From positions 1,888,525 to 1,952,524 of the forward strand of contig CM074816.1 of assembly GCA_037447605.1 (NCBI GenBank): a stretch of 64,000 bases of DNA. The letters run 5' to 3'. This DNA comes from Zygnema circumcarinatum SAG 698-1b (taxonomy: Eukaryota; Plantae; Zygnematophyceae). This document shows, piece by piece, positions 534 through 5,909 of this stretch (position 1 is its first letter; each line of letters begins with the position of its first letter). The translations under genes and the position numbers were made by a program. The notes beneath the pieces were generated by a model, which saw only the letters and a list, made by a program, of their open reading frames with translations, was not told where the DNA came from and searched no databases.

Positions 534-3500
534 ATGGCTGCCGCTGATGATGGAGCTAGCCTTCAGAATAAGCCGTCATTTAAGAAAATCATCAGCTCGT
601 TTGGTATGTTTCAGCTCGTTGAGAATTCGAAATATGACAAACTGCAAGAAACTGAAACTAGCAGTTTAGTGATATCAGTGCTCTTTATAGATGTTTGTGT
701 AGTTCTGCATAACCGTCGGTATGAGAAAACATAATATAATATGTAGAACATCGTCATCAAATAATTGTTTCAATTCATGTTTTTATACACTAAGGGACTT
801 GTAACAGGACAAAACTTCAAGTACACGTCGCCGAGGCAAATATTGAGGATGCATGCTATCTCTTACTATAAAACAGGAGATACTGGTGTTATGAAATGAA
901 ATCTTCAACGCATCCCTTCACATGCATGCATGATCCTACTTGAATTCAGTCGGCTTACGATGGACTGACTGAATTCACCCTGAACAAAGGCTGCCCTATT
1001 GTTCTGACCTGCTCTGAGTAACCGTAAAGCAGGTGCTGGAGAAGAAGAGGTTCTATACAGAGGCTATGTCAGCAAAATGAATCGAGCTGGCCGCCCGCAG
1101 CAGCGAATGTTGGTCGTCACCTCATCGGCCGTTTACCTCCTCGAGTCGAATCTCAAGCGTTGCACACACCGCGCAGAACTGAGAGCTGTTGACGGCATTT
1201 TCCTCACCTCCAGCTCGAATCAGCTCATATTATTGATACCCGAGGTTGAAGCGGAAACTGGCACGCAACTTGACTGTAATATCGTTGTATCACTGATTCT
1301 ATGCACGGAAGAGTCTTGCAAAAATGGCACCAGCACTGTTTGCCTATTACACTCGGCGATGTCTCATTGATTGTTAAGAAAACAAAACATGAGCATACAA
1401 AAAGCGGCTTTCCAAAGATGCTTCCTGCCGCATCCAACCTGCAGTGCTTTCAGACGGTGCACAAAAAGCGAAGGGTGCAAAATCTATTTAGTGTTAGGGG
1501 AGAGGGATGAACTGCACTCTTTCACCTCAAACCTTTTCAATAAGCTCCTTTTTACATTACTCCTAACCCCAACCTTATCACACTAAACCCGTCTTACAGG
1601 GGCAGGATCGCGTATTTGTCACGCCAGACGCGCATCTCATCTGTGAAGTTATGTCCAATGCCTACCTGAAGGCTACGAAAACAGCATTGAAAGTGCAAGT
1701 CACGGTATGCCCAATCAAAGTGATATGCTGAATCGAGCTCTGTGATGATCTTTCTCAAGATAACAACTAAAGGGGCTCGGATGCATCGTCTCCTTCCTTT
1801 GATAGTGAAGCATTCCAACTCGTAAGAAAAAGGGAATCGGTTGACACCTCGTTCATGAATTGATTTTAAACGAATTCTGCATTAACTCTTGCCTGATTGA
1901 GCCTACGCGTCTATGCGGTTAACAGATGTGTCTTCACCTAAGAGCATTCTAGCTCAGATAATTTTCAAACATACTAGAAGGTCACTTCTCCTCCTGGATT
2001 TCATTGAATTTTACACCGCCAATCTTTCTGAGAATCTTGGGCACCCTGTCGATACAGTAGGGACTACTTACTTCTGCATCACTTACCACCTGGAGTTCAG
2101 GAACTTTGGAGCTAAGGAAACGTCGGTTGTGTAAATGTGCTCCCAACAGGATGATCACGACCTCTTCGAAGTATGGCGAAACATGCGAGAAGACAAACGA
2201 AAGCCGGTAAATTTCTCAGCAATCAAGAATAATTTCATGGTCGATAAAGGCTGCATCCCTCTCTTCATGCTTGTAAGCCGATGGAGAATTCGAAAATGGA
2301 TATGTCTAACGTGATTTCAAGCTCAAATGCCTGCAAGGGTCACGATTTGTGTGTCTAGCCTAGACTAGCCGCTGTCACAATTTCTTTAAAGGAAAGGCCA
2401 AGGGAAAATCTGGATTAGCAGGAACGCTCGGCTGGCAGACGAGTCATGCCAACAGACGATGATGACGACTCTGCAATTCCAAGCATTCAAACCCGCGACC
2501 GCTCCCCGACGGTTAGTTCCCTTGACGCGGTCATCATAAGCAGCACCAGTGCATAAAGCAAAATGTTGCGTCCTGGTTGAAATTCCAAGCACAAAAGTAA
2601 ATTGATGTGTATTTTTTGAAACTTCCACAGGTAATGCACTATTCTGCAACGGAGGAGGATGTGGACCTCGATAGCTTTTCCCTTCTGCGATTGCTGGGCA
2701 AAGGCAGCTTCGGAAATGTGAGTTCTCTACTATTTAAGCCCCAGAATAAATTATGTTGTTTCGTGCACCATCTTGGGAATCCCATGCCTCCGATCACTGC
2801 TGCTTTTCCTGCGATAAAACGGTTGAAAACAAGCTCGTCAGCTTCAACAACGCTTAGAGGTGGGTATTATTTTTATTTCAATACTTTCACATCAAGAAGG
2901 ATCTTCCAATTCTTCTGTTGAAATCCCAAAGTTTCATGTTTCGAGACGTTCCAGGTATACCTTGTGCGCCTGCAAAAGACGGGCCAAGTGTACGCTATGA
3001 AGAGTCTGAGCAAAGAAATTGTGATTCGACAAAAGCAGTTGGAGCACACTTTAACGGAAAGACACGTACTTCAGGTGCATATCACCCCTTCCTCCTCATA
3101 AATGATGAGCACCCAAAGCTGAAACTCGCTCCCAATTCGCACACATGCATATGCATGAAGCATCCAATTCAAATTTCAAACCATTGCATTGCAGACAATT
3201 ACACGTTCTCTTTCTCGTGCATCAGGGCTTCCTTGTGCTACGGCTTTTTCGTTGAGCGACTGAATCTTGAGTGGTTTTAACTTTGATATGGTGCACTAAC
3301 CAGTAATCTTCACTTTAGTTTATGGAAAGGAGCTTTATGTGTACGTCTCTCCTCTTGGGTGTTTCTGTAGGCTGTACAGCATCCCTTCTTGGTGAAACTG
3401 CATTGGGCCTTCCAGACAGACTCTCACCTTTACTTCATCATGGACTACCTCAGCGGAGGCGAACTCTTCTTCCATCTAAAGGTGCGTCAAAGAAAAGCAA

Positions 3501-5909
3501 AAGGACGTCTAGTTCTCTACGCAAAGGAACGATTTGATTCAATCAACTCAAAAAGGACTATGTATATGAGCGTCAACCTTCTGCTGTTCATCACCTCCAG
3601 CTTTCTCCCTCTCATTACTGAGGGGTCTTCGACAATTTGTAATAATGATCAAATTTACTGCTGGTTTCGATTTCTACGTAAATCTACAGCAATCTGGCCA
3701 GTTCGCTGAAGCTCGCGCCCGGTTCTATGCGAGTGAAATACTTCTGGCGATAGGCCACTTGCACTCTCTCGGGATTGTGTACAGGTGTGGCTCATAACAC
3801 TCATTCAAATAAGACCCTCCGTAGGTTTCCATTACTGATTATGGGCGGAATATTCCACGTTTCTGCAAAAATGTTGACTTCCACAGCATCCGAAGCTCTC
3901 TAACACTATTTTGAATGGTTCCAAGAATTCTTAAAGAGTAGAGGTTCCAAAAAACTCTTTGAACCCGATGATCCTAAAAGAGTGAGCTCCTGTGGGACGT
4001 GACTTGCAGAGATTTGAAGCCCGAGAACATTTTGCTCGATTCAAAAGGTGTGTCTCCCAAAAAACCCACTTTCTCATTTCTCGTCGAGCGTCCTCCCTCC
4101 CTCCTTATTTTTGTTTCTCCTCGCCCTTAGTACGTTGGCAACACTCGTAACTGCAGGTCACCTCCGCATTACTGATTTTGGGCTGGCCAAGCAAGCTATA
4201 TCGGACAACTCCTCCGCCAGTACTTTCTGCGGTACCCCAGAATATCTCGGTATGCTAGAAAGCTACATAAGGCGCGGTATAGTGAGAATGACTAACCTGC
4301 TTTGAGATGCCCTTTTGTAAACGGTAATGGGCAGTGGAGAAAATACATGAAGGAGATATGGCTGTTTTTTTTCGATGCATGCGTGTTAAGTGTTGGCGCA
4401 GAAAAACCTGTGCTGTATGTATGCGTGTTCGAGAGAGAGAGAGAGAGAGAGAGAGAGAGAGAGAGAGAGAGAGAGAGAGAGAGAGAGAGAGAGAGAGAGA
4501 GAGAGAAAGAGAGGAATGTTTAGAAAATGCTTCCCCTCTTTCTTAAATGGGTAGCGCTTCCTTCAAAAGAATCAAGGCATGTTGTTGAAGATGGGTAATC
4601 CAGGGAGTGGTTGGCATTGAAATGAAGAAAAGGCTTCCATTGGCTGTTGGATGGGGTACAGCTCCAGAAGTGCTCAAGGGGAACGGCCATGGCCGGGCAG
4701 TCGACTGGTGGAGTCTGGGTACACTTCTTTTCGAAATGCTTGCTGGACTTGTAAGCTGGCCTCTTCTCTCACTCTCATATCTTATTTGAACACGAAGCAT
4801 TGCTTTCCTTTGGAAAGCTTAACCTCCTCTTCTTTACCGCATATCTGCTTCTTTCTCTGGCAAAGTAGCTTCATGGGTACTTTCTTTCGGGTTCCGATTT
4901 TCCAATTTCTTTATTTTTTAAATTTGATGAGGTCGGCTGGCTATTGGCTGATAAGCTTTAGAAGCGCATGTCTCTATGTTCTGGGCCAGCCCCCATTCTA
5001 TGACAAGAATGTGAATGTGATGTACAGCCGCATCCTTTACGAACCCCTTCAGATTCCCCACAGCATAAGCGGCGCTGCCCGGGATCTCCTCACCAAGGTG
5101 AGAGAAATATGACCATAGCTTTTATCACTGCGTGCCACTCTCACACACCCGCATGCCTCCCTCTGGCTCGAGTCATCCATAAAAGTCTGGGACTACTCAT
5201 ATTGTCCGCAGAGGCGTTGGCTCAAACAAGTCTTCAAGAAACAGTCGCATTCAAATGTAAAGAAAGCACTGCCCTAAAGATCAGAGAAACTGGTTGTCAA
5301 GGCGGGAACTGCTGTTACTTATATTGTACTTTTCTTTTTCCTTTTTTGGAAGTTGTTGGAAAGAATGCCGGAGAAGAGACTTGGAGCAGGGCCAAGAGAT
5401 GCGGAAGAGATTAAGGAGCACGCATTCTTCAAAGGGACCAACTGGGAGGCCCTCCTTGCTGGAAATACTCAGCCGCCATTTGTGCCTACGGTCAAGGTAC
5501 AGTACTATCTTTCCTAGTGCCCAAAAATCACGAGACCTTGTATGACCATTTTTTAGATAGTGATCGGAAGGAAACGAAGCATGAATGGTCTCTAAGTAAA
5601 ATACATTCATTTTCGTCGTGGTTGGAACGAGACTTAATTCAACGAGACTTTCCTTGCTGTTAATTTGAATGGCAGAGTAATGACGACACGAGCAACTTTG
5701 ATGTTACTTTCACTAAGCAGCCAGTGGAGGGCCCCGAACAAGATGGAAAAGCCGAGCTTTCAAGTTTAAAAGGGAGGCCGACATTTCTGGATACGGCTTT
5801 GTTCGACGGATTTTGTTACAGCCCCACAAAGAAATCGGTGCGGCCGGAGGATTCCCTGCAGAGTCTGTCCATATCCCCAAAGGAGATGGCTCCCGACTCC
5901 GGTGCTTAA
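534..5909 (+). CDS. AGC-family Ser/Thr kinase (SGK/Akt/Ypk-like) with an N-terminal myosin-TH1/PH-like domain; multi-exon
   Basis: Spliced exons give [83 protein letters not shown] and an AGC C-tail (PPFVP..SNFD..FT). The stop is at 5907-5909. Exon 534-603 joins 1033-1244 and then 1600-1704 in frame. The true start could lie upstream of 534. Confidence 0.9.
4431..4506. repeat. (GA)n microsatellite, about 38 units, in a kinase intron
   Basis: Perfect gagaga run read directly. Confidence 0.97.

Follow-up and report, generated by a model that had tools for sequence, protein, structure and literature searches.

The Akt/PKB kinases of animals and PkbA of Dictyostelium carry a PH-fold domain of lipid-binding type N-terminal to an AGC kinase domain. 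SGK1 and SGK2 are without a lipid domain, and that of SGK3 is a PX domain; the hydrophobic motif of SGK and yeast Ypk is phosphorylated by TORC2. Plants have PDK1. The green lineage is described as having neither PKB nor TORC2 (PMC4143559, PMC5745459, PMC12858634), and reviews that also list PKC among the missing kinases conclude that S6K is the sole conserved AGC effector of the PDK1/TOR type. The subject of this work is a plus-strand gene at positions 534-5909 of a 64,000-nucleotide stretch of the genome of the streptophyte alga Zygnema circumcarinatum SAG 698-1b (contig CM074816.1, positions 1,888,525 to 1,952,524; the whole stretch is called the window). It probably encodes a single protein of about 550 residues, in which a TH1 domain of the type found in class I myosins is joined to an Akt/SGK-type AGC kinase, and which would be the green-lineage member of an old, widespread family that is unstudied. 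An earlier note, made from the letters of the window, had placed this architecture outside the standard plant kinome, and the reviews agree (PMC4143559, PMC5745459).

The region 1-6600 of the window was read and candidate exons were translated to build the gene model. It consists of 15 exons separated by 14 introns, all with GT-AG ends, and its single open frame, 1653 nt or 550 codons long, opens with the ATG at 534 and is closed by the TAA stop at 5907-5909. The translation reproduced exactly the N-terminal exon peptides given in the earlier note, together with their in-frame splicing into the frame of the AGC kinase. Searches and structure predictions for the window gene were all performed with single exons, and homologues were placed on the DNA by tblastn or by profile searches. 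A profile of 109 TH1-kinase proteins matched exon 2 and exons 6-15 in strictly collinear order, with no further match on the two strands of the 64-kb window.

Exon 1 (534-603), which comprises the start codon plus 23 codons and ends in phase 1, resembles by eye the N-terminal helix preceding the TH1 core in the relatives. The core, corresponding to beta strands 1-6 of the PH-like fold, lies in exon 2 (1033-1244), the translation of which closes with LILLIPE. Exon 2 alone (70 residues) matched the Pfam family Myosin_TH1 (PF06017) with 43.9 bits (E 2.7e-11, profile positions 36-106 of 185), above the gathering cut-off of 31.1 bits and well beyond chance, and its language-model neighbours (Atlas features) were Myosin_TH1 clusters. 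In PDB its sole match by sequence was the Myo1c tail (4r8g, E 0.23). The AlphaFold (AF2) model of exon 2, made with 108 aligned relatives, had six strands and a predicted local confidence (pLDDT) of 94.2; in Foldseek the top PDB match of this model was 4r8g_E, with a weak E value of 0.03 and 32% identity, and the 50 fold matches listed were all PH-like. When the complete TH1 domain of a relative (P0117, residues 10-180) was modelled (pLDDT 90.6), the top match was again 4r8g_E (E 2.3e-7), followed by CARMIL PH, hSac2, Sec3 and many PH domains including that of Akt, whose structures ranked 38th-45th. The tail TH1 of Myo1c (PDB 4R8G) was thus the top match in both fold and sequence, and the lipid module of the window gene belongs by Pfam to Myosin_TH1, not to the PH family of Akt (PF00169).

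The remainder of the PH-like core, its last strand and C-terminal helix, is assigned by position to exon 3 (1600-1704; translation starting GQDRVFVT). This exon gave no match of its own in Pfam or PDB. It matched the family profile weakly at the collinear position (hmm 105-133, 0.2 bits), and by eye an ungapped alignment with the last strand and the C-terminal helix of the relatives was obtained. It lacks the EYDY motif, which is nearly invariant among them. Exon 4 (2150-2206), predicted from GT-AG sites and the open frame, would complete the TH1 region and encode a basic linker. Taken together, the Pfam match, the language-model features, the AlphaFold and Foldseek results for exon 2 and the conserved basic residues described below support the TH1/PH-like N-terminus proposed before and the assignment of the N-terminal 130-180 residues to a myosin-I-type TH1 domain with an extended PH-like fold. 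The gene is not a class I myosin, as it has no motor: the TH1 core is preceded by only 23 codons, and Myosin_head gave no match. Unlike in class I myosins, motor and IQ motifs are absent, and TH1 is N-terminal and joined to a kinase.

The signature Lys (1074-1076) and Arg (1104-1106) of the beta1-beta2 region are present in exon 2, and the beta1-beta2 loop is strongly basic. Across 100-109 aligned TH1 rows Lys, Arg and Tyr (K14/R24/Y34) were invariant, and all three are kept in the window. The Lys and Arg of exon 2 align with the VVK and RPR positions of Myo1c, which we take to be K892 and R903. Mutation of the signature residues K892 and R903 of Myo1c is stated to abolish binding of the phosphoinositide PIP2 (PMC3771945, citing Hokanson 2006). 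From these residues we infer that the TH1 domain binds anionic phospholipids. A fused protein in which TH1 served as a protein-binding or purely autoinhibitory PH-like module, with no role in lipid recruitment, is an unlikely alternative in our estimation. Proteins are the ligands of many PH-like folds, CARMIL PH, talin F3, TBC1D23 PH and Sec3 PH came next among the structural matches, and the missing EYDY motif of exon 3 would fit such a role; however, the loop is strongly basic, and the Lys/Arg pair, whose counterparts Myo1c requires to bind PIP2 (PMC3771945), is invariant in the family and kept here.

All kinase motifs (GKGSFG, AMK, YRDLKPEN, DFG and APE) are found in exons 6-15. Between the TH1 region and the kinase, exon 5 (2422-2511; 5' junction predicted) encodes an acidic low-complexity linker. 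The kinase starts in exon 6 (2631-2717), with the Gly-rich loop GKGSFG at 2697-2714. The catalytic Lys of AMK (3000-3002) and the Glu of alpha-C are in exon 7 (2955-3074), and N-lobe and hinge sequence is in exon 8 (3371-3481), which scored 69.7 bits on the family profile. Exon 9 (3690-3784) covers alpha-E up to the YR of YRDLKPEN, the catalytic loop DLKPEN follows in exon 10 (4010-4047), and exon 11 (4157-4249) carries DFG (4174-4182) and the activation loop with its Thr at 4222-4224 (STFCGTPEY). Exon 12 (4662-4750) contains the APE motif and alpha-F, exon 13 (4990-5097), matched by the family profile, belongs to the C-lobe, and exon 14 (5353-5496) holds the end of the kinase domain and the start of the AGC tail, which is completed in exon 15 (5676-5909). 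For exon 15, Pkinase_C (PF00433) was found with 23.3 bits (cut-off 20.9); there was no PDB match for this exon alone.

Exon 11 together with the first part of exon 12 encodes an activation loop of the Akt type, with the Thr of the PDK1 site. Against PDB, exon 11 scored 37.5 bits with Akt2, 36 with Akt1, 34.5 with SGK1 and 27.8 with S6K1. The closest PDB matches of exon 14 were PKN1/2, MSK1, S6K1 and Akt2. Among solved structures, the kinase of a full-length relative was best matched by SGK1 (352 bits), a small lead over yeast PKA (341) and S6K1 (340), with Akt2 at 315 bits; the activation-loop sequence of SGK1-3 and yeast Ypk1/2 is the same as that of the window. To judge by its motifs, the C-terminal part is a catalytically intact AGC kinase of the Akt/SGK type with an AGC tail. 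The 'Akt/SGK-like' kinase of the earlier note proved a fair descriptive label, as the activation-loop exon was closer to Akt and SGK than to S6K and the best match of the relative was SGK1; the label describes resemblance and makes no claim to orthology. A plant S6K is unlikely, given that the activation-loop exon scored 27.8 bits with the S6K compared, S6K1 of PDB, and 37.5 bits with Akt2, and given the presence of TH1.

The hydrophobic motif in the C-terminal tail reads FDGFCY (5802-5819), with Cys (5814-5816) in the place usually taken by the phospho-acceptor. In the relatives the motif is F-x-G-F-T-[FY], and the protist relatives all keep the Thr. With Cys in place of Thr, the usual phosphorylation of the hydrophobic motif would be impossible, and in this respect the window gene differs from Akt/PKB, in which the position is a phosphorylatable Ser or Thr. 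The Cys codon was covered by contigs of one public sequencing run (X3), and none of the differences listed between contigs and assembly fell there. In the coding sequence of the C-tail, between the turn region and the motif, six differences were found in 33 nt (5755-5787) between the assembly and an X3 contig, which points to a fast-evolving linker or to a divergent allele.

By analogy with Akt/PKB, with which it would share the logic of lipid recruitment and PDK1 activation, the protein may work as follows. The basic beta1-beta2 pocket of TH1 would bind anionic phospholipids and place the kinase on the membrane; membrane binding would perhaps also relieve autoinhibition, as with the Akt PH domain. 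PDK1 would then phosphorylate the activation-loop Thr (STFCGTPEY). FDGFCY keeps the aromatic docking residues, and the second phosphorylation, carried out elsewhere by TORC2 in Akt and SGK, would be impossible. Such a lack of hydrophobic-motif phosphorylation would fit a lineage without TORC2.

An exhaustive search with exon 2 of 1.84 billion representative proteins returned 37 matches, all with at most 42% identity. They included class I myosins, proteins with several TH1 domains, TH1-RhoGEF proteins, and fragments in which an N-terminal TH1 is followed by a kinase. The gene's own product was not among the representatives, which means that the proteins of the source genome are not in that collection. 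Starting from one of the fragments (P0009), more than 120 clusters of proteins of 520-600 residues were found, which have the composition PF06017, Pkinase and Pkinase_C and are collinear with the gene model. Named members come from stramenopiles (Hondaea, Mucochytrium, Cafeteria, Cantina), Rhizaria (Leptophrys, Euglypha) and a euglenid (Ploeotia). Many carry the automatic label 'serum/glucocorticoid-regulated kinase 2' (SGK2) of the Joint Genome Institute. When placed on the window, relatives gave 10-11 collinear high-scoring segment pairs with 46-50% identity. Their TH1 is at about residues 30-97 and the kinase starts at about residue 194; the spacing between the two domains is 89 residues in the model and 97 in P0117. 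One apparently kinase-only match (P0187) had a TH1 open reading frame just upstream, across an intron.

Members of this family, such as the Hondaea fermentalgiana 'Protein kinase, putative' (P0044), are like the window gene in domain order, length and spacing. The Lys, Asn, Arg and Tyr of TH1 are invariant in them, and a 12-residue activation-loop sequence is identical to that of the window. The window gene differs in having FDGFCY instead of FxGFT[FY], in lacking EYDY, and in its location in the green lineage. A profile of relatives combined with the window exons retrieved the same protist family again and no named full-length member from the green lineage. In the papers searched on TH1 combined with AGC or other kinases, a pufferfish STE11-TH1 protein (PMC4177888) was the only case met, and no description of a TH1-AGC family was found. 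The architecture is thus plentiful in databases but the family is uncharacterised, and the window gene is a divergent green-lineage member of it. The claim that the architecture is unusual consequently holds with respect to the standard plant kinome as reviewed, but not in the sense of uniqueness, as there is a large protist family and a corresponding locus in Selaginella.

Full-length TH1-AGC entries were also found under the names of barley, the amphipod Hirondellea gigas and Batrachochytrium salamandrivorans (P0112, P0138, P0066). Their identity to P0117 is 48-68%, which is protist-like, and the labels may reflect contamination. Outside myosins, TH1 also occurs as tandem repeats (2-3 per protein) or upstream of RhoGEF in metagenomic and protist proteins (P0002, P0003, P0005, P0012).

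In the lycophyte Selaginella moellendorffii (GL377570.1, 2.73 Mb; L002) TH1 exons are located at 28444-29170, and kinase exons follow about 280 nt downstream on the same strand. Counterparts of exons 6-15 are present in equal order and with equal boundaries, with 50-77% identity (76% for exon 12) and about 64% over exons 6-14. This kinase was the closest sequence fetched, compared with 46-50% for the protists. The TH1 part is 37% identical to that of the window gene; two of its intron positions are shared, and intron 3 of the window gene has no counterpart in this locus. The Selaginella C-tail (about 30816-30905 of L002) appears to end early, and it has no recognisable FxxF[ST][YF] hydrophobic motif. 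At NCBI the locus is annotated as two genes, for a 202-residue TH1 protein (LOC112344728, XP_024525820.1) and a 317-residue kinase. Judging by its length, the 317-residue model seems to begin with the AMK Met and to omit the Gly-loop exon, and would thus be truncated; the segment 28444-30929 looks, from exon order and similarity, like one mis-split TH1-AGC kinase gene orthologous to that of the window. No single in-frame GT-AG intron joining the TH1 exon to the Gly-loop exon was found in L002. A word-based search with the Selaginella TH1 protein (P0026) returned only the query itself. A TH1 exon pair sharing the intron position is present in Diphasiastrum, and the intron at the end of exon 1 also matches Selaginella; no kinase was found within 10 kb of this TH1 exon, where introns may be long.

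Contigs from three public runs were compared with the gene, leaving out the repeat region 4419-4519. Eight of the 14 introns (1, 2, 5, 6, 7, 8, 9 and 10) matched GT..AG contig deletions to the base. A single X3 contig, its short side 27 nt long, showed the joint of intron 1 (604-1032); that of intron 2 was found in an X2 contig extending 49 nt beyond it, and that of intron 5 in contigs of X1 and X3. Introns 11-14 were not spliced in any of the contigs listed. The differences listed between haplotypes or strains are in introns 4, 8, 9 and 11, in exon 11 (4215 and 4236) and in the cluster in exon 15; none of those listed is in exons 4-10, which is weak evidence as 22 more exist outside the listing. 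Two contig joints, 458->1009 (X2) and 2470->2667 (X3), had CT..AC ends, that is GT-AG on the minus strand. These could represent transcripts spliced on the antisense strand across the gene's 5' half, or, with short sides of 28-30 nt, assembly artefacts.

Several of these observations weigh against a single fused protein. No contig among those listed showed splicing of introns 3 and 4, the two that connect the TH1 part with the kinase, none of the runs carrying DNA of the gene is recorded as RNA, and unspliced contigs in the same runs indicate that pre-mRNA or DNA was also included. The weak resemblance of exons 3 and 4 to the family, the in-frame ATG at 2446 in exon 5, which could start a kinase-only product, the split NCBI annotation in Selaginella, and a stand-alone 229-residue TH1 gene in Chloropicon primus, with no kinase gene nearby, point in the same direction. 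Support for the exon linkage from spliced contigs is accordingly partial: eight of the 14 introns were seen removed, but the two that join the halves are not among them.

The main rival to the fused protein is a pair of adjacent genes, a TH1-only gene (exons 1-3 or 1-4) and a kinase gene starting from an ATG in exon 5 or 6, with the common frame arising by accident from phase-0 exons. Besides the points just listed, it could draw on a second in-frame ATG at 2634, on the stop met eight codons after read-through past the exon 3 donor, and on short TH1 clusters in the Atlas whose commonest phylum is Streptophyta. We nevertheless consider two genes improbable. Order, strand and spacing are conserved between the alga and the lycophyte, and the 317-residue Selaginella kinase model looks truncated, without the Gly-loop exon. 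TH1 and kinase are on one polypeptide in hundreds of relatives, many of which are transcriptome open reading frames marked complete, and the linker length of the model fits the family. Finally, the junction between exons 3 and 4 (KVQVT|DDHDLFEV) aligns with KVTDHLFLL, an uninterrupted coding sequence in Selaginella, and is thereby supported. The TH1 and kinase exons thus very probably encode one fused protein.

That the gene is foreign, derived from a protist contaminant contig or acquired recently by horizontal transfer, with a stramenopile-like organism as donor, is highly improbable: all named full-length relatives are protists and some plant- or animal-named database entries look like contaminants, but the closest kinase is that of Selaginella (about 64% identity against 46-50%), kinase intron positions match Selaginella with two more shared in the TH1 part, the 64-kb window is uniform in composition, and three studies contributed runs, all under one organism label, that contain the gene. 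Contamination in particular is unlikely given the exon structure in common with Selaginella. As an orthologous locus exists in Selaginella, the gene appears to have been inherited vertically in streptophytes.

Some features of the surroundings may be added. Intron 11 carries a long (GA)n microsatellite at 4437-4506. On the 3' side of the gene, the segment 6500-7000 is G+C-rich, with C/T-rich runs and with long open reading frames of the two strands that overlap (such as 6335-6904, minus, and 6383-6715, plus), and is probably repeat-derived. An Rfam search of the window gave no match.

The algal gene and its Selaginella counterpart suggest that a lipid-recruited AGC kinase has survived in part of the plant lineage, and its presence in streptophytes runs contrary to the general claim that the green lineage has no PKB-type kinases. 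Tentatively, an ancestral lipid-recruited Akt/SGK-like kinase might have been kept in streptophytes, in this alga and at least in lycophytes, after the loss of TORC2, with loss of the hydrophobic phosphorylation site, as a PDK1-only 'plant Akt' that was later lost in seed plants; this scenario is possible but doubtful. If true, the green lineage as a whole could no longer be said to lack PKB-type signalling. A correction of the Selaginella annotation is probably possible. The Cys of the hydrophobic motif offers a simple, testable hypothesis on how an AGC kinase could be activated without TORC2, and the gene draws attention to the large TH1-AGC family of stramenopiles, Rhizaria and euglenids.

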